Positions 10,236-39,860 of a stretch of DNA of 64,000 nt are shown piece by piece. A model generated the notes under the pieces. That model was given only the letters and a program-made list of their open reading frames with translations, was not told the DNA's origin and made no database searches. Made by a program: the position numbers and the translations under genes. This stretch comes from Anthoceros angustus (Eukaryota > Plantae > Anthocerotophyta), in contig VJWM01000044.1 in assembly GCA_010909165.1 (NCBI GenBank), forward strand, positions 62,001 through 126,000, read 5' to 3'. Each line of letters starts with the position of its first letter. Position 1 is the first letter of the stretch.

Positions 10236-12103
10236 TCAGAGGTTGAGCACACCAGATCTGGCAGTCAGAGCTGGTGTGAAGAACTGGGCAACCCCAGCAG
10301 CTGCGGATTTGAGTCCGCTGTCGTAGCCACCTGACTGTGCAAAGTAAGCGCCGTTGAGGAAGAGATCGTTGTCCGAATGCCAGCTCCAGTTGTTCCCGCC
10401 GCCAACCTCACGCTTGGTCACCTGCCAGATCGATTGAGGAGCATTAGAGTTATGAAGTCACGCCAAGAAGCACACAAACAGGAGGACTGAAATCTGTGGC
10501 TCACCTGCTTAGCTCCACCGGCCACAAAGTGGTTGCCTTCGCTGAGAATGGTCGGATCTGCGCTTCCTCCAATTGCGTAGATGCCCCAACCATCGGGATA
10601 ATCGTTGTTGATGACGTGGAACTCGCCATGGCGGCAACGGGGCATCCTCTGCACCAGGTTGGGTCCGAAGGTGTTGTATGCAATGGTGACCTTCAAGATC
10701 TTGTCCGCGGTGAAAGCATCGCTGTGACCCAGAAGCATCACCTGCGAGGAGGAAGGCCCAGGCCAATTAAACATTGCGGAGAGGCCACGAGAAGGGAGCA
10801 AGCAAAAGCTTAAGCAAGAGCAAACACAAACACAAACCTTGTCGTGATCGGAGAAGTAGTTGTTGGAGATGGTGATAGCAGTGGAAGCGTGAATGACATC
10901 AATGAGACCGTCAGTGGCGTGCCTCAAAGTGCAGTGATCAATCCAAATGTGAGAACTTCCGAAGACACTGATAGCATCCCCATCAGAGCCACCTCGGTAG
11001 CCGGTGTGAGTGGTGGAGCTGATGACATTCCCGCTGTGGCCCGGAGCGCAGTTCTGAAAGGTGATGGACTCCACGATCACATGCGACACAAACTGGATGG
11101 TAAAGCAGGGCGCTCCGTTCCCCACAGTCACCTTCCTCCCGCGGCCGTCGATGGTCTTGTACCCCTGGATGATGAGCTCGTTGTCGAGCTTATAGTCGAA
11201 GTCCCCAGCGAAGATGATCCACAGCGGCTGAGGCTGGATGACGCCGTACCTGAGCGTCCCGGGGGCTGGGTTCACAGCGTCGTCCCCGCCGTCTGTGACC
11301 ACGTAGTAGGCACCGCCCTTCCCTCCCGCAGCATCAGACCCGAATCCGATGGCGCAGTCCGCAAGCTTCTGTCTGTCGGCCGCCCAGTTGGGTCCCAGCC
11401 AGCAGTTGTCGATGGGATTGCCCCTCCCGCCATAGCTACCGCCCAGGGGAGTGGAGGGCACCGGGGGGATCTTGGGCACGGAGGGAGTGTGAGGCACCGG
11501 GACATGAGGCTTCTTCTTGGGCAACTTCTTCTTCAACACGGGGACCTTCTTCTTCAACACCGGGACCTTCTTCTTCAACGCAGGGACCTTCTTGCTGCTC
11601 TTCTTCTCCGCCTCCGAGCTCTTCTTCTTCTTCGTCTTGGTCGTCTTCTTCTTGGAGTCGTCGCCGCCGCCGCTGCTCTTGGTCTTCTTCTTCTTCTTCT
11701 TCTTGTCCGTGGTCTTCTTCTCGTACGGGCTCTTCTTCTCCGCGGGCTTCTTGGACTTCTTCTTCTTCTGCAGCCGCTCCAGCGTCAACAGCCTCCGCCA
11801 CACCCCGGAGGTCCTGCATTGCATCAGGCGGTGAGAACAAGAAGCAGCTCCCGGATCGCCCACAAAAACCCACAACCCACGCACCCCCTCCCAATTCCCT
11901 CACCTCACGTCCTCATCCTGGTCGGCGACCTGAGTCCCGCTCCCGGACGCGACCTCCAGCTCCTCCCCGACGACATCCGCCTCGAGGTCCCCGAGCTCCT
12001 GCAGGGCGACCGCCCCGGGCAGCGCCCCGAGGCGCAGGCAGGAGGCGAGCAGCGAGAGCAGCAGCAGCGACCAGAGGGCGGTGAAGCACTTGACGCGCGC
12101 CAT
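10236..12103 (-). CDS. Pectate lyase (PL1) with an N-terminal acidic pro-segment, Lys-rich domain and Pro-rich linker; 4 exons (12103-11904, 11813-~10838, ~10741-10504, ~10421-10236)
   Basis: Signal peptide MARVKCFTALWSLLLLSLLAS; plant PL1 motifs [101 protein letters not shown]. Confidence 0.95.
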
Positions 12104-12409
12104 GGCGGGAGGCGGGGAGCGCGGGGTCGCAGAGCGGCAGGGCGGGGGACCGGGGGGCGCCGAGGTCACAGGTGCAGCATTGCGGCAAGCAAGCAGAGCG
12201 CAGGGCCGGCGAGAAGAGAATGGGAGCGGTGGAAGGATCGGCGCGCTCTTGTACCCACTCGAGATTGCACGGATTCCAAGCACCGAGGCCGAGGCCGAGG
12301 CCGAGGCGAGTGAGCTCAGGAGATGCGAGAAGGAGACGTCTCCAGCTGGAGACGAGACGGACAGAGTCGGCTGTTGCTTGTTGCAAGCTTGAGGAAGTGG
12401 GCAGTTGGG

Positions 12410-12425
12410 CGGGGGCATATAAAGG
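12410..12425 (-). promoter_or_regulatory. Candidate TATA box of pectate lyase 1 within a GC-rich (CCCCGG repeat) promoter
   Basis: CTTTATATG on the minus strand ~315 bp upstream of the ATG, flanked by very GC-rich sequence. Confidence 0.4.
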
Positions 12426-22513: not shown

Positions 22514-25500
22514 CTAGTTTCTTTTGTATGCTACAAGTCCATTTCGGATGGTGGATGTCATCGACTTCAATCTGGCATATATCTGTTTCCTCTCCGGGTG
22601 CTCCTTATCTTCTACCACAAAATAGTGCAGTTGGCTCTCGAATTCCATCCAGGTACGACCGGGTTCCTTCTCAACACCTCTATCCTCCACGAGTTTTCTT
22701 AACTCTGCGTGGTCCTTCCATAGGCCAGCTCCTGCATAGATGTTTGACATCATGCAATATGCAGCTGAGAGAGTGGGATCAAGTCTTAGTACATTGTCAA
22801 ATGCAAGTTCTCCTTGCTCCACGTTACCATGGATCTGACAACCTGCAAGCAGAGAAAGCCACACAATGGCGTCGGGCAGAAATGGCATTCTCTGTACAAG
22901 CTTTACAGCCTCACAAAGATGACCAGCACGACCAAGGAGATCTACCATGCATGTGTAGTGCTCCATGTCAGGGAGGATGCCAAATTCTGCAGACATAGAT
23001 TGCAGCAGCAAGTCCGCCTCCCTAATCAGACCGCCATGACTACATGCTTGTAGTAGGCATAGGAAGGTAACTCTGTCTGGTTGAACTCCTTCCTGTAGCA
23101 TCCTGTTAAAGAACTGCAGGGCAATTCTGGCACTCCCGTCCTGAGAGTATCCTGCAATCATCGCATTCCATGACGCAAGGGCTCTCTTAGGCAGTCTGTT
23201 AAACACTTTGCTTGCATCCGGAATGCTCCCACATTTTGCAAACATGTCAACTATACAGTTGCCAAGATAGAGCTTACACTCTAAACCTCTCCGCAAAATC
23301 TGTGCATGAAGCAGCTTGCCTTGATTCAATGCTGCCAAACCTGAACATGCCTTAAGCATGCTGATGAAAGTGATTTCGTCTGGTTGAATGCCCTCCTCCT
23401 GCATTGCTTCGAACAGTTGAATACAACGGTCATACTCACTGTTTTGCATATGTGCAGCAATTATAGCATTCCATGAAACCAGATCCCTGCCAGTAAGCTT
23501 GTGAAAGACGGCGTACGCATCCTTCAGGTTTCCACACTTGGTATACATGTCAATCAGTGAATTGGCAAGCACAACATCCGACTCCAAGCCACATCCTATG
23601 ATGCAAGCGTGAACTAGCTTTCCCTGATCTAAAGCTCCAAGATTGGAACATGCGTTCAAAACGATGATTAGAGTGCCCTCATCCATGGCAATGTCCTCCT
23701 GCTCCATTTCCTGAAATAGTGCTAGTGCTTCCTGACTGCAACCATGCTGGGCATATCCTCCAATCATAACATTCCACAAACCTACATCTTTCGTTTCCAA
23801 GCTACTAAATACTCTGTGGGCATCCTCCAAACTCCCACATTTGCAGTACATGGTTATGGTGCCTCTCATAATCTCATTTGACGCAAAACACGCCTCCAAA
23901 CAGCAGCTATGGAGGATTCTGCCAAGCTCTAGTGCAGCCTCGCTGGCACATGCTTTCAAAATGCTGACAAGCGTGACCAAGTCTGGCTGAAAACTTTCCT
24001 GAGACATTTTCAAGAAAAGATCAAGAGCTTCCTGACCAAAACCATGCTGGGTGTATCCTGCAATCATTGCATTCCACACCACCAGGTTTTTGGAAGATAT
24101 TCTATCAAACACTCCCCGGGCAATGTCTAAATTCCCACAACTGGCATACATGTTGATCAAGGCGCTGCAAATAAACGCATCGGACTCAAGACCTGGCACA
24201 GTTATCCCAGCATGAAGTAGCCTTCCTTGGTCCAGGGCTGCTAGACCAGAACATGCTTGAAGTACGCTTACAAGGGTGACCTTGTCTGGCTGCATCCTTT
24301 CCTGATGCATTTCATGCACCAGTTGAAGTGCCTTCAAACTGGCTCCATGTCGTGCATAGCCCGCAATCAATGCATTCCACGACACAGAATTCCTTCTCTC
24401 CAATCTATCAAAAACTCTTTGAGCGTCCTCCAGGCTCCCACACTTCGAATACAAGTCAAGGAGGGTGCTGCTTAAAACTATGTCCGACTCAAGCCCCTTC
24501 GCCATGATCTGGACATGTACCAGCTTGCCGTGATTGAGATCTGCTGCTTTGGAGCACGCCTTGAGAATACTGAGAAATGTTACCCTGTTAGCCTCCATCC
24601 CTTGCTGTTGCAATTGGTGGAAGAGTACAAGGGCTGCGTGAACTTCTCCATTGTGGGCATACCCTGCAATCATGGCATTCCAAGTTACCAACGTTTTTGT
24701 GGCCAATCTGTCAAAAATACAACGTGCATCCTCCATGCTGGCACATTTGGAATACATATCAATCAGCGTGCTGCCAACAAATTCTTGTGACTCAAAACCA
24801 CGTTCCATAATCTGAGCGTGTACCAGCTTTCCTCGGTCTAGGGCTACTCGACTGGAACAAGCTTTCAGAAGGCTGACGAAAGTAACGGTGTCTGGCACCA
24901 CGCCGTGCTGCTGCATCTGGTGAAAAAGCAAGAATGCAACTCGATCATCTCCACAGTGGGCGTAGCCTGAAATCATGACATTCCATGTCACCAAACTTTT
25001 GGTCAACAATCTGTCAAACACTTTGCGTGCATCTTCTAGGTCCCCACACTTTGCATACATATCAATCAAAGTGGTGGCGATGAATACATCTGACCCAAAA
25101 CCACCCTCAATAACGTGAGTATGGAGCAGCTTGCCCTGCTGTAAGGCACCTAACCTGGAACATGCTTTGAGAAGGCTCACCAGGGCAATCTGGCTTGGGA
25201 GTTTACTCTCGAGGTGCATTTGCTGGTATAGGCGGATGGCAACCCAGCCATCTCCATGCTCAGCATATCCCACAATTAGAGCACTCCAAGACATTGGGTC
25301 TCTCTCTGTCAGCCTGTCAAAAACTGACTGGGCTGCCTCCAGGCTTCCACAGGAGGCATACATGTCAATGAGGGCGCTGTTAACCCACGGGTTGGAGTGC
25401 AACCTGTATTTCATCAAGTGGGAGTGAGCATTCTGTCCTGCTGCCAGAGCCCCTGCAGCCGCGCAAGCTTTCAAGTCGGCCACAATTTCGCTCACACTAA

Positions 25501-25795
25501 CACCCTCAGGCCGCAAATCCAAATCGCTGTGGAGCTCCACAGCTTGGTCAGCCATGTCGTGCTTGAGCTTAGCTGACATGGTTTCAGTAGGATGCCCCTT
25601 CTGTGGAGCCTGGTTGTTACCCTCCCAGCTTCCGCAACTAGACGACATACGGAGGAGGTTATTCCCCGAAGACGACCTGAACCCACAGGCTCCATCACCA
25701 AGCCACTTGCCAGCTGAAAGCTCTTTCTTTCCCGTGCCCTCCTGCAGAAAGTTGAAGAGCACTTTGGCAGTAACACAAATTTCTCGCCAGCCCAT
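22514..25795 (-). CDS. PLS-class pentatricopeptide repeat protein, E/E+ subgroup (no DYW), intronless; probable organellar RNA-editing specificity factor
   Basis: Eight repeats of the 'LIDMYxKCG...SWNAMIxGY...TFVSLLKACS' triplet; then HYTCMVDLLGRAG, E motifs PDAIVWLSLLAGCQIHGN and AAYCMMSNIYA, PG-box KEPGRTW and E+ HPERKQIY, then stop. The exact start Met is uncertain. Confidence 0.95.
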   Translation of the reverse strand: MGWREICVTAKVLFNFLQEGTGKKELSAGKWLGDGACGFRSSSGNNLLRMSSSCGSWEGNNQAPQKGHPTETMSAKLKHDMADQAVELHSDLDLRPEGVSVSEIVADLKACAAAGALAAGQNAHSHLMKYRLHSNPWVNSALIDMYASCGSLEAAQSVFDRLTERDPMSWSALIVGYAEHGDGWVAIRLYQQMHLESKLPSQIALVSLLKACSRLGALQQGKLLHTHVIEGGFGSDVFIATTLIDMYAKCGDLEDARKVFDRLLTKSLVTWNVMISGYAHCGDDRVAFLLFHQMQQHGVVPDTVTFVSLLKACSSRVALDRGKLVHAQIMERGFESQEFVGSTLIDMYSKCASMEDARCIFDRLATKTLVTWNAMIAGYAHNGEVHAALVLFHQLQQQGMEANRVTFLSILKACSKAADLNHGKLVHVQIMAKGLESDIVLSSTLLDLYSKCGSLEDAQRVFDRLERRNSVSWNALIAGYARHGASLKALQLVHEMHQERMQPDKVTLVSVLQACSGLAALDQGRLLHAGITVPGLESDAFICSALINMYASCGNLDIARGVFDRISSKNLVVWNAMIAGYTQHGFGQEALDLFLKMSQESFQPDLVTLVSILKACASEAALELGRILHSCCLEACFASNEIMRGTITMYCKCGSLEDAHRVFSSLETKDVGLWNVMIGGYAQHGCSQEALALFQEMEQEDIAMDEGTLIIVLNACSNLGALDQGKLVHACIIGCGLESDVVLANSLIDMYTKCGNLKDAYAVFHKLTGRDLVSWNAIIAAHMQNSEYDRCIQLFEAMQEEGIQPDEITFISMLKACSGLAALNQGKLLHAQILRRGLECKLYLGNCIVDMFAKCGSIPDASKVFNRLPKRALASWNAMIAGYSQDGSARIALQFFNRMLQEGVQPDRVTFLCLLQACSHGGLIREADLLLQSMSAEFGILPDMEHYTCMVDLLGRAGHLCEAVKLVQRMPFLPDAIVWLSLLAGCQIHGNVEQGELAFDNVLRLDPTLSAAYCMMSNIYAGAGLWKDHAELRKLVEDRGVEKEPGRTWMEFESQLHYFVVEDKEHPERKQIYARLKSMTSTIRNGLVAYKRN

Positions 25796-26199
25796 GAGAT
25801 GCTGCTGCACGTGAACAGCGTCATTGAGCTGTGTCTGTGAAATCTGATAGACAACCTGCAAGTTATGGGACGATTTCGATCCTTGCCAATTCTATCAAAT
25901 GAGACAATTGTAGTAGCCGCAGCTCTGCAAGCACACGATCCCCTGGTTCCTTACATCCAACGACATGATGGCCTGCCACCTCCTTCCTGGCTACATTTTG
26001 ACCATTTCTTTCTTGCATCGGGCTCCGCTCCCCCGTGATGTTCACACTACACACCTAGCTCTGGGCGTTCAAACTCAGCCGTAGACTAGGTGATGCAAAC
26101 CCTTCCCCACTGCAGAGCATGAAGAAATTGTTGGAGAGCAGCTTCTTGCACACAAAACTGTGTGTGCAAAGCCGGGGAGCCTTGTAGATCCAAAACAAC

Positions 26200-26805: not shown

Positions 26806-27672
26806 GCAGGAGGTGCAAGGGAGGAGAACACGAATCAGGGCCAGGAAGCAGCCAGGCCACAGCTGGTGGACGGACACCGATGGACTGGTGCATAGTTTCT
26901 GGGTTGGAGAGGGAGGAAAAGGAGGGTGACAGCCGAAATGAAGAAACGAAAGTATGTGGGAAGACATATCCTATGTGGAAAGGCAAATGTATTGTGTGAG
27001 CACAACGACAATCTGGCTATGGTCTCAAACAAGACACCCCCCCATGTGATCCCCTTGTTGTCACTGTGAAAGATGTGGCGGTTTTGCGTCCATCGTCACT
27101 CTGCCTACCGAAGATATAGCAGTCTCGGGAACAGTTGTTCAAGGACGGAAAACGTTCTTTTGAGGAAGCGAGGGGCTGATATGCCCAGACATGTTGCAAC
27201 TTGCATGCATATGCTTCACTCTCTAAAACCTCAGAAGATGAACTGATCATGCTCTATGACAACGTCTAGTTCGACCCCATCCATCAAGGTTTTGAGTTGA
27301 ATTATGCCCATAAATTGGTTTCTGGATCTGCTTATACTTGATGCGGGAATATGATTGGTTCTCATTGAAGAAGAAGAAGACGAAGAAGAATGAAGGACGT
27401 CTCAACCTCCTCCAATGGCCAATGTGTGATGCATGGCGAATGTGTGATGCATTCATGATCCGCACCTGCGAACATTGCTACATAAACTACATAAGCCGCT
27501 CCAGGCGTGCAGCTTTTCCACTTTCCTTTTGTCCTCTGAATGTCATCTCATCGCTGGTGGGCCATCACTTGTATTGTTATATGTTGTATAGACGACTTTC
27601 TCGAGAAAACAAACATTGTCCGTCTGGGAGAAAGGCAGGCCGCAGGCAGGCTCTTCTGCATCAACTTCCATC

Positions 27673-30003
27673 CAACAGACCAACTGTCCTTTGTCATTTC
27701 CAGAAAAGATACGCCCACGATGACGCACAACGTCTCCTTTTCTGGTGGCGACAAAAGCACGTGGATCCAAACATCTGATGGAGTGAAGCTTTTCTACAGC
27801 AACAATTACAACAACTCTCTGGTACCAGCATCCTATTGCACCTGGTACTGGGTTGCGGTTATATTGGGATGCACAGCTCTATGTTATGCTATGAAGATTC
27901 AACACTTCTACCACCTCCGCTGGTTGGCCGGCTGCGTGACCCATCCAACAGAGAAGTGAGGTCGCAGGAAACCAGAATATAGTACAGCAGGTGGAACGCC
28001 TAGCACGGGATCCTTGCTCTGCAAAATAAGGGGCCAGCTTGTGCAGTCATGATACCAACAAGAGCCGCTGGTTTGGCGGGCGTGCCGACGGACTTCGAGA
28101 AAGTGTAGCGCTGCTCCGCTGCTGTTTTGGCACCCGATTGAACAAAAAAGGCCCCGTTCAACAACAGATCATCTGATGACCACCAGTCCCAGGACTCCCA
28201 ATTGACATTTGTGTCCCGCTTTGTCACCTGTACATAGGCACACCATTTTCAGTACAGTTGAGGAGATTGCCAACACTTTGGAGATGGCCGCAAGAGAGAT
28301 TTGCAACTTACCTCTTTGGTGGTAGAAACATCCGAGGCGAGATATCGGTTGCTCTCGCTGTAGATGGTGGGGTTGGCACTGCCTCCACTGCATACATCTC
28401 CCACTTGGTGTAGTCGTTGTTGACAACATGGAATTGGCCAAAGCGGCACCTGCAGGGCAGACAGAATGCTATGCCAATAAGCAACTTCTGGGAAGAGGAG
28501 ATTGCTGTGATTGGCTATAACAAGTAATATTGGCTCATCAATGAATACCTGGGCATTCGCTGAACCAAGCCTTCTCCAAAATGGTTGAGAGCAACGGTAA
28601 CTTGCATGTCCTTGTCTGCGGAGTACTCATCACTGTGACCCAGCAGCATCACCTGTGGCACATTGGACGTTTCTTCATGTCAGAGCACCGGGAGAGTGGA
28701 GAATGCTATCCACAACTTCGTGTAGTGATTCAGAAATGTTGCAAGTACCTTGTCATGGTTTGTGAAGTAGTTGTTGGAGATGGTGATGGCCGTGGAAGAC
28801 ATCACAGCATCGATGAGCCCGTCTTGACAGCTTGCCAACAGACCAACTGTCCTTTGTCATTTCCAGAAAAGATACGCCCACGATGACGCACAACGTCTCC
28901 TTTTCTGGTGGCGACAAAAGCACGTGGATCCAAACATCTGATGGAGTGAAGCTTTTCTACAGCAACAATTACAACAACTCTCTGGTACCAGCATCCTATT
29001 GCACCTGGTACTGGGTTGCGGTTATATTGGGATGCACAGCTCTATGTTATGCTATGAAGATTCAACACTTCTACCACCTCCGCTGGTTGGCCGGCTGCGT
29101 GACCCATCCAACAGAGAAGTGAGGTCGCAGGAAACCAGAATATAGTACAGCAGGTGGAACGCCTAGCACGGGATCCTTGCTCTGCAAAATAAGGGCCAGC
29201 TTGTGCAGTCATGATACCAACAAGAGCCGCTGGTTTGGCGGGCGTGCCGACGGACTTCGAGAAAGTGTAGCGCTGCTCCGCTGCTGTTTTGGCACCCGAT
29301 TGAACAAAAAGGCCCCGTTCAACAACAGATCATCTGATGACCACCAGTCCCAGGACTCCCAATTGACATTTGTGTCCCGCTTTGTCACCTGTACATAGGC
29401 ACACCATTTTCAGTACAGTTGAGGAGATTGCCAACACTTTGGAGATGGCCGCAAGAGAGATTTGCAACTTACCTCTTTGGTGGTAGAAACATCCGAGGCG
29501 AGATATCGGTTGCTCTCGCTGTAGATGGTGGGGTTGGCACTGCCTCCCACTGCATACATCTCCCACTTGGTGTAGTCGTTGTTGACAACATGGAATTGGC
29601 CAAAGCGGCACCTGCAGGGGCAGACAGAATGCTATGCCAATAAGCAACTTCTGGGAAGAGGAGAGATTGCTGTGATTGGCTATAACAAGTAATATTGGCT
29701 CATCAATGAATACCTGGGCATTCGCTGAACCAAGCCTTCTCCAAAATGGTTGAGAGCAACGGTAACTTGCATGTCCTTGTCTGCGGAGTACTCATCACTG
29801 TGACCCAGCAGCATCACCTGTGGCACATTGGACGTTTCTTCATGTCAGAGCACCGGGAGAGTGGAGAATGCTATCCACAACTTCGTGTAGTGATTCAGAA
29901 ATGTTGCAAGTACCTTGTCATGGTTTGTGAAGTAGTTGTTGGAGATGGTGATGGCCGTGGAAGACATCACAGCATCGATGAGCCCGTCTTGACAGCTTGC
30001 CAA
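27673..30003. repeat. Near-identical tandem duplication (unit ~1163 bp) covering the 3' half of pectate lyase 2
   Basis: 27673-28837 matches 28835-30003; stop codons at 28000 and 29163; junction microhomology CCAA. Confidence 0.92.
28000..28837 (-). pseudogene. Partial 3' duplicate of pectate lyase 2 (no promoter or 5' exons)
   Basis: Encodes [10 protein letters not shown]...VMLLGHSD...QRMPR...[17 protein letters not shown]...ARIPC*; 1-nt deletion in the YAVGGS codons. Confidence 0.8.
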
Positions 30004-30837
30004 ATAGACGTGGTCCACCCAGATGTCTCTAGAACCGAAGATGGAGATTCCGTCTCCATCTGACCTTGTCCTCCACCCATAGTGAGTAGGAGAGCTCCTC
30101 ACCATGGCATTCCCAGCTGACCGACAGTTGTACACTTTCACACCGTGAATTATGACGTTAGAGATGAATTGCAAAGTGAAGCAAGCACCGTTGGCAATGT
30201 GAACATCAGCGCCTCTCCCGTCGATGGTCTTGAAGCTGTTCATGATCAGCTCCTCCCTGAGCTCAATGACCATGTCTTTCTCAAAGACAATCCACAGCGG
30301 CTCACTCTGAATGACAGCATGCCTCAGCGTGCCTGGTTTCGGGGTCACAACGTCGTTGTCACTTGAGTCAGTCACAACGTAGTACCTCCCGTACTTGCCG
30401 CCCAAGGCATTCCTCCCGAACCCAATGCCGCAGTCAGCCAGCCTCTTCCGATTGTCGGCCCAGTTGGGATCGCACCTCCAACAATCGTCGATCGGGTTGC
30501 CAGTGAGCTGACATCCCCGTCCCCGTCCCCGTCCCCGGAGCTGCAGTCTGGTGCTGCTCAAACAAACAGCAAATAAAAGGACATTGATCAGCCTCCTTTC
30601 TGCCTGAATCAGGACCAAGCTTGGAATTCGCTTTCGCAACGGATACCTGGCCGAATCGTTGGCTAAGTTCCTGGGCATTGTGTGAGATCCTCGCAACAGA
30701 TGGGTAGCCGCATTGTCGTCTGTTTTCTCCACAGCTGCTTCAGATGCCTCGGCCAATGCTGGTGCCCCTCCAATGAGGATCCCAAGAAAGAGGAGCAGAA
30801 GCGGAAGCAAAGCAGCCTGAGCCCATTGCTGGTCCAT
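29163..30837 (-). CDS. Pectate lyase (PL1) 2, canonical plant type
   Basis: Signal peptide [24 protein letters not shown]; [64 protein letters not shown] 1-nt homopolymer deletion in the last exon (A5 vs A6 in the duplicate) is probably a sequencing error. Confidence 0.92.
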
Positions 30838-35765: not shown

Positions 35766-37547
35766 ATGATTTGAGGTCGACTGCTTCTTCATCTTCGTTA
35801 TCATTTTGTCTGTAAGTACCTCCAGGCTCCGATAGCAGCAGTACTAGTTCGTGTTGATCATGGGAATCCTTCGAAGGCCAGATCTAGGTGGTCTAGTGCC
35901 TGTTGGACAAAGTTGTAAAGTCGGACTTACATTTGACAGCGGTGAATATACAGGGAAGCATTCAAGATGACAACGCCTTTCCGACTTCTTCAATGTACAA
36001 TCTGTATCACAATCCTGTTGCTGATATTTGGCTCCCATGAGAGTCTGGGCGTCTGCAAAGTTGGTGGGAACCAAAGGCACGATCAAGACCTACAGACTGG
36101 AGCATTGGATGCTTGATATTTGGTTCATATATAAGTGGCAGACTTGTATGAAAAGAATAGGATTTCTCAGCTGCAGATCTTCAGAAGCTAACCAATTGAA
36201 TTCTGGGTGCAGGAACACACGTCTTTTACAGACTGCGAACGGAAGCGTCGACGCAGCTGGGTGCGCCCAGACCGGCAACTCCATCGATGACTGCTGGAGG
36301 CTCAATGCAAACTGGTCCACGGACCGCACAAAGCTGGCGGGCTGCTCAATGGGCTACGCAAAGCAAGCATGGGGTGGCAAAGACGGAGCCATCTACACAG
36401 TGACAAATGCAAGCGATGATGCCGTAAATCCCACTAACGGAACGCTCCGCTATGGAGTCATCCAAACGGAGCCTTTGTGGATCGTGTTCAGCAAGGATAT
36501 GAGAATCAAGCTGCAGCAGGACTTGGTGTTCGTCAACGACTATAAAACAGTGGATGGAAGAGGAGTAAACGTGGAAATCGAGAACGGTGCAGGCCTCGTT
36601 CTAGAGGGAGTGTCGAATGTGATCATCCACGGAATCAAAGTCTACAATATCGTCTACAACAACAAAGGAGGGCAAGTGAGATTATCCCCCACTGTCGTAC
36701 AGGGGCGAGGGTCGGCAGGAGAGGATGGGATTAAAATCATCAACAACGCCAGGTTGATCTGGATCGACCACTGCTACCTCGCAAACGGCACCGACGGGCT
36801 CATCGACGTGACCAAGAATTCCACCGATGTTACGCTTTCCAACAATCTCTTCGAGAATCACGATAAGGTAAGCACGGACATTCATTCCAGATGATCCTGA
36901 TTCACAGCTGAGCTGGAAGTTTCCACTAAACGATGGTCACATGCAGGTTATCCTTCTGGGTGCCGATGACGGCGACACAGCTGATGTGAACATGCGGGTC
37001 ACAGTCACCCTGAACCGGTTCGGCAAAGGTCTGACACAGAGGATGCCGAGGTGGGTGCCTGGAATCTCATGTCCCAATGTTCTTGTCAAAACATGTATAC
37101 AGTTCACCTCAGACCAATACTGTGGCTGATGGATGCAGATGCCGCTTTGGACAATTTCACGTGGTGAACAACGACTATCTGCCATGGGGATCATACGCCG
37201 TAGGAGGCAGCGCCAACGCCACCATCAACTGCGAGGCAAACCGGTACACGGCAGGGGATCACAAGGAGGTGACGAAGCGCATGGACGACACTGACTCATG
37301 GAAGAGCTGGAACTGGCGTTCAGAGGGCGATCTGTTCGTAAACGGGTCCTTCTTCACTGAATCAGGCAGCCAGGATGCTTCAGCTTATACGGCAGCCACC
37401 AGTCTGCCAGCCAAGTCAGCATCCATGGTAGCAGCCATGACAGCGGATGCTGGTCCGCTCAAGTGCAAAGCAGGAGCTGCTTGCTGCTCTCAAGCTGCTG
37501 GTATATCTGATCTTACCAATACTCTCCGTAAGAATACCATGAAGTAG
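35766..37547 (+). CDS. Pectate lyase (PL1) 3, divergent; 5' exon structure uncertain
   Basis: [56 protein letters not shown]|VILLG, QRMPR|[36 protein letters not shown]. Confidence 0.9.
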
Positions 37548-37904: not shown

Positions 37905-39860
37905 TCAGTTGGGTGAGGGGACCATGTGCTTCATCTCAGCCATCTGATTCCGGAACTCGCTGTCCATAGATCCTAATTTTTCTTCCAAGTGTCGTATAAT
38001 AACCTTTGACTGCCTCAACTGGTCAGGGCTTCGTACCTTATTCTCCTTGTGGTGGGCATTTGATAGAATCGAATATTGGTATCTGAGAGAATCCTCCTGA
38101 ACTGTATCCTGGTCCTGGTCCTTGACCACGGCAGCCAGATGCTTACTCAGCCTTTCCAAGGCATCCTCTCGTTGCCTGAGCTCGTACTCCATCTCCGTAA
38201 CTTGCTCCTTTAGACTGCTTTGTTGCAATCTGTCCATTTCCTTCTCTTGAGCTGCCGCGTCCAGCAGCCTTCTGGCTTCACTCAGTTCGTGTGTCAGCTT
38301 GGAGCAGCTATCAGTTTTCTCTTGAACAGACCGCTGATAACTTTGGAGCTGGCGATGCAGGCCTGCTGCCTCCTCCTCTTTAGTCTGTGCAAACTGTAGT
38401 GCTTCTTGGTTGATGGTGACCAGCTCCTTTATCCTTACCTTGTGCCCCTCAGTCTGTTTTACTACATCCCGAAGCTTTTGCAGCAGGTCAAACTTTTCCA
38501 TCACAGTTGCGTCGGTTTCACTCTGAATAGCATGCATCCTTCTCTTCAACTCCTGCAGTTGAGAGTCCTTGTCTGCCACCATGCGCTCTAAGCCAGAAAT
38601 TTTCAGCTCGTTCTTTGCAAGCTCCTGCTCTATACCCTTAGCGGAAGCAAGTTTGGCTTCCTTCAGCTGTATCTCCACGGAAGCTTGTAGGCCTTTGTAC
38701 TGAGACCTTAAATCTGCCAGCTCTGTTTCTACCTTTGTAAACTCCACTGCTATTTGGGAGTTCAGCTCCTGAGCAAACTTCAGTGTGTTCTCCTTTCTCT
38801 GCATCTCCTCGGCATGCTGTTGAAGGGCTCTCTCCAGGTCTTTCCTTGCAGTCTGTAGCTCCTGTTGCAGGTTCAGAATATGTTGATCAGTCATGCCCGG
38901 CTGAACCCGTAGCAACGGCCTCCCACTGTGATAGTCTTTCAATTCAGCTACAGCTGTCTGCAGGATCGCAACCCATGGTGGCATAGCAGCAGCTTCTTCC
39001 CTCAAGTCCCCTTGGACAGTCTTGCTGAGTACAGCCAGCTGATGGGTCAGTTCCATGAAGAGTCGAATAACAACGCCGAGAACTCCGAGCTTGCTTACCT
39101 CGTCCTCCCCAAAGTAAACTTGGGGCTTTCGGGGACTACCTTGTTGCATTTGAAAGGTCGACAACAGCTGACCAACGAGAACAGTAACAAAATCCAATTC
39201 CCCACTACTGGATGTCAAAGATAGGATTTCTGACACGCCTGCTCCTTGAGAGTAGAGGGCATGCAAGCAGCTTGCTGCATCAGACAATTTGTCGGGAGCA
39301 TCATCAAGAATGTCAGTCGTCACCTGCTCTTGAGTTGCTACTCTAAGTTCTCCCTCCAATCTGCTCACTTCGGCCCTGAGCATCTGAGCTTCCGTTTGCC
39401 AGTTCAGCTCCACCTGCTCTTCAGCCACTTCAGAAACAAATGTCACTTGTCTTTCTAACTTCTTCATCGGAAACTTCCCCTCCTCATTCCCTGCCCTCCT
39501 GTCTTCAAAAATCTTGGACTGGTAGAAAGAACTATACTGCAGAAGCGAATCCGTGCTCTGAACATACATAGTTTTAGTTGTCTGCTCAGAAGAACCAAAT
39601 GCCGTGTTCACCACTTTGGCATGCAGAGTGTCATCAAAGAAAACCTTTTGAGTCTCCACCATCAGCAACCTCCTCTCCAGCTCCTCCAAGGCGTATCTCA
39701 TGGAAAGCCAAGCTCTTTCTTGCTCCTCTGCGATAGAAAGCAGCTCTACCTTGGCCATCTTCACGGTTTCTTGCTGGTGTTCCGCAGCTGAAAAACCTGG
39801 TTGTTCCAGGATTTGCAAGACACTTGGAAACTCCATAACCAGCTCTTTCGCAATGGCCAT
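37905..39860 (-). CDS. Long coiled-coil protein of unknown function (651-aa exon; further 5' exons may lie at 39900-40600)
   Basis: Uninterrupted 651-aa ORF, E/Q/L/K-rich with heptad character; no enzymatic motif recognised. Confidence 0.7.
   Translation of the reverse strand: MAIAKELVMEFPSVLQILEQPGFSAAEHQQETVKMAKVELLSIAEEQERAWLSMRYALEELERRLLMVETQKVFFDDTLHAKVVNTAFGSSEQTTKTMYVQSTDSLLQYSSFYQSKIFEDRRAGNEEGKFPMKKLERQVTFVSEVAEEQVELNWQTEAQMLRAEVSRLEGELRVATQEQVTTDILDDAPDKLSDAASCLHALYSQGAGVSEILSLTSSSGELDFVTVLVGQLLSTFQMQQGSPRKPQVYFGEDEVSKLGVLGVVIRLFMELTHQLAVLSKTVQGDLREEAAAMPPWVAILQTAVAELKDYHSGRPLLRVQPGMTDQHILNLQQELQTARKDLERALQQHAEEMQRKENTLKFAQELNSQIAVEFTKVETELADLRSQYKGLQASVEIQLKEAKLASAKGIEQELAKNELKISGLERMVADKDSQLQELKRRMHAIQSETDATVMEKFDLLQKLRDVVKQTEGHKVRIKELVTINQEALQFAQTKEEEAAGLHRQLQSYQRSVQEKTDSCSKLTHELSEARRLLDAAAQEKEMDRLQQSSLKEQVTEMEYELRQREDALERLSKHLAAVVKDQDQDTVQEDSLRYQYSILSNAHHKENKVRSPDQLRQSKVIIRHLEEKLGSMDSEFRNQMAEMKHMVPSPN

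Follow-up and report, generated by a model that had tools for sequence, protein, structure and literature searches.

Type-I pectin methylesterases (PMEs) are made as pro-proteins whose RRLL/RKLL motif is processed by subtilases (PMC13477033). In a second described system, the binding of the cationic peptide RALF22 to de-esterified homogalacturonan depends on charge (bioRxiv 10.1101/2023.08.23.554416). For the pectate lyase-like (PLL) proteins themselves, the parts named in a recent survey of the whole family (10.1101/2024.12.04.626843) are limited to the catalytic domain, a signal peptide, Pec_lyase_N, and a low-complexity motif at the C-terminus; Pec_lyase_N is described as having an unknown function (PMC3017822). 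Neither a Lys-rich extension nor RRxL or propeptide processing turned up for pectate lyase-like proteins in the open-access papers and preprints that we searched. How pectate lyase activity is confined in plant walls is poorly understood. Here we describe a gene for a predicted secreted PL1 lyase of the hornwort Anthoceros angustus, located in a stretch of 64,000 nucleotides (contig VJWM01000044.1 of assembly GCA_010909165.1, positions 62,001 to 126,000, forward strand; hereafter the window, with positions counted from its first letter).

The product of this gene runs, in order, from a signal peptide of about 33 residues through an acidic segment, TSGVW, RRLL, a Lys-rich segment, a Pro-rich spacer, and LGGSYGGRG to the PL1 domain, which begins at NPIDNCW. 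This layout is conserved from zygnematophyte algae to ferns, and we regard it as very probably real and ancient and, given its recurrence, probably functional. The hornwort lyase points to a pro-protein layout across the family that seems so far to have escaped notice. An earlier reading of the locus, made from its letters without database searches (the sequence-only reading), had named RRLL as a processing motif and invoked the binding of cationic peptides to de-esterified homogalacturonan, and both are documented in the papers cited above for PMEs and RALF22.

Architecture and translation of the hornwort gene

Exon-by-exon translation of the minus strand gives a gene of four exons (12103-11904, 11813-10838, 10741-10505, and 10421-10236), with its start ATG at 12103 and GT..AG borders on all three introns. 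Every element that the sequence-only reading had listed for 11430-12103 is present on the minus strand where that reading placed it, and the splice from 11904 to 11813 that it proposed is right by sequence, removing a GT..AG intron at 11903-11814. Intron 1 is in phase 2, so the Arg preceding TSGVW is a split codon. The features of the gene, all on the minus strand, are as follows.

10236-12103: whole gene, by exon-by-exon translation, with GT..AG introns and PF00544 on exons 2 and 3
12005-12103: probable signal peptide of about 33 residues, with a basic n-region, a Leu-rich core, and AVA before the likely cut, judged from composition
11904-12004: acidic pro-segment of 33 residues, net charge -11, plus the end of exon 1 with two bases of the split Arg codon; by translation
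11814-11903: intron 1, 90 nt, GT..AG, phase 2, just upstream of RRLL, read from the sequence
11786-11797: RRLL, at the boundary between the acidic and basic parts and a candidate for subtilase/S1P-type processing, by translation
11507-11785: polycationic low-complexity domain of 93 residues, 42 of them Lys (45%), net charge +35, every Lys codon AAG
11525-11593: three tandem 21-bp units encoding KKKVP(A/V)L, by Tandem Repeats Finder (period 21, 3.3 copies, 93% matches)
11447-11506: Pro-rich spacer of 20 residues, with 8 non-contiguous Pro, by translation
11435-11436: in-frame alternative 3' splice site (AG, then C), from a script scan
10838-11419: first part of the PL1 domain, from NPIDNCW to SDHDK, up to the end of exon 2; PF00544; aligned to Jun a 1 residues 2-197 (E 6e-57), with DGDA and DGLID kept
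10505-10741: exon 3, PL1 with the RMPRCR motif; PF00544 at 36.7 bits; aligned to Jun a 1 residues 198-271 (E 7e-27)
10236-10421: exon 4, the C-terminal part and stop, by translation

An AAG repeat without stops is open in two of three sense frames, and openness alone therefore proves nothing. We relied instead on G+C content at third codon positions (GC3). For the 80 non-Lys codons of the N-extension, GC3 is 0.93 in the Lys frame as against 0.60 and 0.54 in the other two, which identifies the Lys frame as the coding frame; the value for exon 1 is 0.95, and the introns of the gene have no third-position GC periodicity. The Lys frame also connects the signal-peptide exon with the catalytic domain. 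This codon-position signal shows that the Lys segment has been translated over the long term.

The N-extension has 123 codons, of which 43 are AAG and none AAA. Eight (AAG)4 runs occur in the window, six of them within the Lys-rich segment (0.02 expected). Pfam and other searches, as well as fold prediction, were run exon by exon, and no carbohydrate-binding module (CBM) or other Pfam family was found on the tail. The translation holds no Ser-Pro(3-5) or PPVYK-type repeats; the tail has one Tyr, and its Pro residues are non-contiguous. No second R[RK]xL motif lies next to the PL1 domain. For the charge profile and a shuffle test, the exon-1 and exon-2 translations were set end to end with X at the split codon, and a strict R[RK]xL arose in 9% of shuffles. 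AlphaFold on exon 2, with a six-row alignment, returned a poor model (mean predicted local distance difference test score 46, with 25-38 and no confident structure over the tail), which is compatible with a disordered tail and is not evidence for it.

PF00544 scored above its cut-off (24 bits) on both exon 2 (30.7 bits) and exon 3, and the acidic motifs DGDA and DGLID, together with RxPxxR, are conserved in alignments to Jun a 1, to bacterial Pel structures, and to five relatives. Going by PelC and BsPel, we take DGDA and DGLID to be the Ca-binding acidic residues and RxPxxR to be the Arg-bearing motif. Exon 4 ends in GVLNL and lacks the pair of terminal Cys found in many enzymes of seed plants; similar C-terminal endings occur in Selaginella P0012 and Ceratopteris P0124/P0137. 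Judged by these alignments, the hornwort protein is a PL1 family member with intact catalytic motifs, and lyase activity, Ca-dependent beta-elimination of de-esterified homogalacturonan, is predicted.

Conservation of intron position is confined to two PL1 paralogues in the window; the Selaginella gene has no intron before RKLL, but it has one after its Lys run. Upstream of the lyase ATG, a TATA-like TTTATAT is found at 12417-12423 (minus strand). As it overlaps an in-frame upstream ATG (12418), that ATG is probably not transcribed. The presumed 5' leader contains a four-codon upstream open reading frame (ORF), MLHL followed by a stop, at 12166-12180 (minus strand).

The layout in other streptophytes

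The sequence-only reading had pointed to ferns and lycophytes as places to look for relatives, and Lys-rich stretches following R[RK]xL, or RKLS or KKI in its place, are present in Selaginella, Adiantum, Ceratopteris, the fern-like protein P0122, and the alga Closterium. In Selaginella P0012, the signal peptide is followed by a segment that is weakly acidic, then by RKLL, about 17 Lys or Arg in a run, a YYKPKY motif, and PL1. In profile searches, Adiantum P0121 showed RKLS and then about 100 residues of Lys-rich sequence with YYKPK motifs before PL1, while Ceratopteris P0124/P0137 carried RRQL/RREL followed by a KHKRK cluster, also before PL1. An uninterrupted ORF encodes P0122; it lies on contiguous 1.65-kb contigs from three RNA sequencing runs, which look like tail-retaining transcripts. 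A name look-up and an exhaustive profile search added P0219/P0317 of the zygnematophyte Closterium, with RRKL/RRAL and then about 60 residues rich in Lys and Ser. Lys plus Arg peaks at 17-18 per 30 residues in the proteins of the hornwort, Selaginella, and Adiantum and in P0122; those of Ceratopteris and Closterium reach 11-15, and no other hit exceeds 10.

Other algal proteins (P0183, P0321, P0234, and P0235, from Mesotaenium, a Leptophrys transcriptome that may include algal prey, and another assembly) have RRxL followed by a helical-looking module of about 110 residues; some of them also carry a Lys/Pro/Gly-rich or Ser/Lys-rich stretch. This module stands directly after RRxL, contains Cys and an AWHxLxxAQYW motif, has no Pfam match, and is not recognisably PMEI-like; it may be an undescribed pro-domain. 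A Pfam scan of the N-extensions of the relatives found no family apart from PF04431 in the angiosperm type. A word search scored on the hornwort N-extension alone, which was swamped by Lys words, gave no new tail-bearing proteins; all 15 of its hits were ordinary lyases of seed plants, matched over the first quarter of the PL1 domain.

In shuffled extensions, a strict R[RK]xL arose by chance in 3-21% per protein. The motif is found at the same acid-to-base boundary in hornwort, Selaginella, Ceratopteris, and Closterium. Given that per-protein rate, its recurrence at this boundary in a hornwort, a lycophyte, a fern, and an alga makes chance unlikely.

The sequence-only reading had considered the architecture foreign to seed plants. 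That view stands for the long polylysine, which is absent there, but not for the order of elements. In the CWRC-type seed-plant and related enzymes of our sets, RR is found in 19 of 20 and R[RK]x[LIF] in 13 of 20 within at most 35 residues upstream of PL1, while R[RK]x[LIF] occurs in only 3 of 121 members of the PLL2/16-like and seed-free group. The small version in seed-plant enzymes places RRxL 12-20 residues ahead of PL1. In the type with Pec_lyase_N (PF04431), this domain stops exactly at the L of RREL (P0193 residues 45-102; P0196 residues 39-94), and a short basic patch such as RGKKKHKGK follows RRxL. PF04431 gave no match on hornwort exon 1 or 2 at E up to 1, with P0193 (1e-17) and P0196 (3e-16) as positive controls. 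The order of acidic pro-region, RRxL, basic stretch, and PL1 is general; what sets apart the hornwort protein, and those of the alga, lycophyte, and ferns, is only the length of the basic stretch.

The trees were restricted to the PL1-coding portion of exon 2. The first placed the hornwort gene with Selaginella P0012, a tailed fern clade, and a short fern clade in a single clade (support 98/94) that was sister to the angiosperm PLL2/16 group. In a tree with algae, the algae were basal, the hornwort and Selaginella proteins lay unresolved at the base of land plants, and the ferns came next, followed by two large seed-plant clades. The long-Lys proteins occupy early branches of the PL1 tree. Within close pairs, the N-extension has diverged much faster than the domain (identity 64 versus 94%, 56 versus 84%, and 44 versus 81%); the residues around the motif, together with the first basic cluster, form a block that stays the same within the Ceratopteris pair and within the Closterium pair.

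Proposed processing and pectin tethering

The reading that we favour, tentatively and at somewhat below an even chance, is that of a secreted PL1 lyase-like pro-protein with a retained polycationic tail that targets pectin, on a plan common to its streptophyte relatives. The basic stretch would have grown mainly through slippage of AAG repeats and the 21-bp triplication into a disordered polycation of 93 residues. A Golgi or apoplastic subtilase (S1P/SBT type) would cut after RRLL and free the enzyme of its acidic segment. With RRLL positioned upstream of the tail, the cut would not part the polycation from the enzyme; the Lys-rich domain would remain on the mature protein, joined to it by the Pro-rich spacer, and could bind polyanionic, de-esterified, Ca-crosslinked homogalacturonan, the substrate of the lyase. 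Such binding would keep the lyase local, possibly in competition with Ca2+ at junction zones. Cleavage, tail retention, and pectin binding are what we infer from the layout, as distinct from what has been shown here. We lean slightly towards processing at the R[RK]xL motif, and tethering to pectin by the tail is plausible, though we hold back from calling it probable.

The sequence-only reading had gone further and had the acidic segment mask the polycation during secretion. The numbers speak against this: with a charge balance of -11 against +35 (in the relatives, -3 to -13 against larger positive charges), masking is doubtful. More simply, the acidic segment might hold positive charge at a distance from the signal peptide.

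Several observations weigh against the retained, pectin-binding tail. Many dibasic sites within the tail could let proteases strip it, and the in-frame acceptor at 11436|11435 could, by its sequence, allow the insert to be skipped. The searched protein collections held no transcript, protein, or hornwort orthologue of the gene, the closest protein being 69% identical. Mosses (Ceratodon P0211/P0324 and Physcomitrium P0328) have long, strongly acidic extensions without RRxL; that of Ceratodon spans about 180 residues with 40 Asp/Glu and one Lys, and that of Physcomitrium about 100 residues, so that the opposite charge stands at the same position. The motif itself is degenerate in two fern proteins, the pair of Adiantum P0121 and the fern-like P0122 (RKLS, KKI). 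The tree requires at least four changes of the long-basic state, which makes gain and loss indistinguishable and repeated expansion possible. As Lys runs can arise repeatedly by slippage, common ancestry of the long tails is unproven.

Slippage is also the basis of the best-surviving alternative, that the Lys stretch is a tolerated low-complexity expansion, ignored by selection, of a linker for which flexibility and hydrophilicity suffice, and that only the RRxL pro-region logic is functional. The exclusive use of AAG for all 43 Lys codons, the perfect (AAG)n runs, and the 93%-identical 21-bp triplication are in keeping with it, as is the Selaginella P0012 run, likewise an AAG/GAG repeat; the tails cannot be aligned from one lineage to another and range from about 20 to 100 residues in length. 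Yet a basic composition is found at the same position from Closterium to ferns, with a short patch in angiosperms. An AAG-type repeat read in other frames would give Glu or Arg runs, and it is Lys that appears in every such lineage. One of two sister fern clades has lost the entire extension, with no compositional drift. We consider a neutral linker unlikely.

A distinctly unlikely alternative is that the Lys domain acts only inside the cell, as a pro-peptide cut at dibasic sites and serving as inhibitor, chaperone, or sorting signal, or that it is spliced out. Joining the 11904 donor to the 11436|11435 acceptor would delete 378 nt and with them RRLL together with the Lys domain and the Pro spacer. 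In the script scan, this AG, which lies behind a pyrimidine-rich Pro-coding stretch, was the sole in-frame candidate with at least 60% pyrimidines upstream, and its pyrimidine content is similar to that of the three annotated acceptors. The tail has many KK/KR sites, the solved relative Jun a 1 begins directly at NPIDSCW, and the pro-region of type-I PMEs controls Golgi exit (PMC13477033). Against removal by splicing or by proteolysis, the codon-position signal reflects long-term translation of the segment, the transcripts of the fern-like relative keep the tail, and the conserved R[RK]xL precedes the tail instead of standing between it and the domain.

The tail could also anchor the enzyme to another target, such as anionic membrane lipids, arabinogalactan proteins, or rhamnogalacturonan II, or could be attached covalently through Tyr/Lys as in proline-rich wall proteins. 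Tyr/Lys/Pro motifs of the YYKPK type in Adiantum and Selaginella and the Pro-rich spacer of the hornwort protein fit this view, and cationic wall glycoproteins are reported to act on rhamnogalacturonan II (PMC4973674). The mismatch between -11 and +35 speaks against stoichiometric masking as well, and the acidic segment may instead serve translocation. The single Tyr of the hornwort tail and the lack of extensin-type SPPP repeats in it argue against such anchoring, and homogalacturonan, at once the substrate of the lyase and the most abundant polyanion of the wall, is the simplest target. A different anchor is, on balance, improbable.

Finally, it is highly improbable that the Lys stretch is an artefact of the gene model, intronic or untranslated and merely held open by a stop-free repeat: although two of the frames, Lys and Glu, are open (stops interrupt the Arg frame) and no transcript of the hornwort gene was found, high GC3 is confined to the Lys frame and matches exon 1 where introns lack periodicity, that frame links the signal-peptide exon to PL1, and annotated and transcript-derived relatives carry the insert.

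If the retained, pectin-binding tail is extended to the whole family, all streptophyte lyase-like proteins would be RRxL-processed pro-proteins, and the basic stretch would be a fold-less module of ancestral origin that targets them electrostatically to de-esterified pectin. It would be long in zygnematophyte algae, hornworts, lycophytes, and ferns, shortened to a patch in seed plants, and exchanged for an acidic, repelling extension in mosses. We consider this generalization doubtful as it stands. A conserved RRxL with a basic stretch suggests two layers of control over lyase activity, namely processing by a subtilase, as in PMEs, and delivery to de-esterified pectin by charge. In effect, the extremes in hornwort, lycophyte, and ferns are natural gain-of-length variants.

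Neighbouring genes and known systems

The window holds further PL1 sequences. A second PL1 gene, of the CWRC type (30837-29209, minus strand), encodes a signal peptide, then has a phase-2 intron just before TRLQL, followed by RGRGRGRG and the domain. It is a short, Arg-based version of the layout, with its intron at a position matching intron 1 of the lyase gene. A tandem segmental duplication (28000-28886 versus 29209-30063, and 27540-27959 versus 28832-29122) copied the C-terminal half of this second gene together with a flanking ORF, and the extra copy looks like a truncated pseudogene. A third paralogue, at about 35967-37547 (plus strand), is of the CWRL type and has NTRLLQT upstream of the domain. 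With these two genes and the duplicated fragment, the window contains a cluster of three PL1 genes plus a fragment. It also contains an intronless ORF of 1115 residues (22514-25861, minus strand) with pentatricopeptide repeats plus E and E+ motifs, as RNA-editing factors of plant organelles typically have, and an uninterrupted ORF of 651 residues (37905-39860, minus strand) that is rich in Glu, Gln, Leu, and Lys, coiled-coil-like by eye, and without a Pfam family.

Among solved structures, the closest to the hornwort enzyme is Jun a 1 (PDB 1pxz), a PL1 beta-helix with the same acidic and RxPxxR motifs. Unlike the hornwort protein, the solved chain, starting at its NPID motif, has neither pro-region nor tail. 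For the tail itself, a functional likeness is bacterial: BT0996-C is a positively charged, non-catalytic part of a pectin-degrading enzyme reported to bind polygalacturonate (PMC9843283). It is a folded CBM-like domain, whereas the hornwort tail is an unstructured stretch of Lys, Pro, Ser, and Thr without a family match.

The RALF and LRX-RALF systems share with the hornwort protein a precursor with an RRxL site, processed in their case, and a cationic part, which in RALF is the released product and binds de-esterified homogalacturonan by charge (10.1101/2023.08.23.554416; PMC9113046). Neither a RALF domain nor its Cys pattern was found in the hornwort protein, with no Pfam match and no Cys between RRLL and the PL1 domain. 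The cationic part is of low complexity and fused to an enzyme in the hornwort, in contrast to the folded signalling peptide of RALF.

Within the family, the Pec_lyase_N-type seed-plant PLLs (PF04431; Arabidopsis PLL8-11, PMC3017822) resemble the hornwort protein in order, with a signal peptide, a partly acidic pro-region, RRxL, a basic patch, and PL1. Their basic patch is 8-15 residues long, as against 93 in the hornwort protein, and their subfamily lies within the CWRC clade of the tree, away from the hornwort gene. In terms of pro-protein logic, the type-I PMEs come close: like the hornwort lyase, they are secreted homogalacturonan-modifying enzymes with an N-terminal pro-region and RRLL/RKLL (PMC13477033). 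The PME pro-domain is PMEI-like, whereas no Pfam family was found on exon 1 or on the exon 2 N-extension of the hornwort lyase. In place of such a domain, the hornwort protein has a short acidic pro-segment, and it differs from the PMEs in carrying a polycation between the site and the enzyme.

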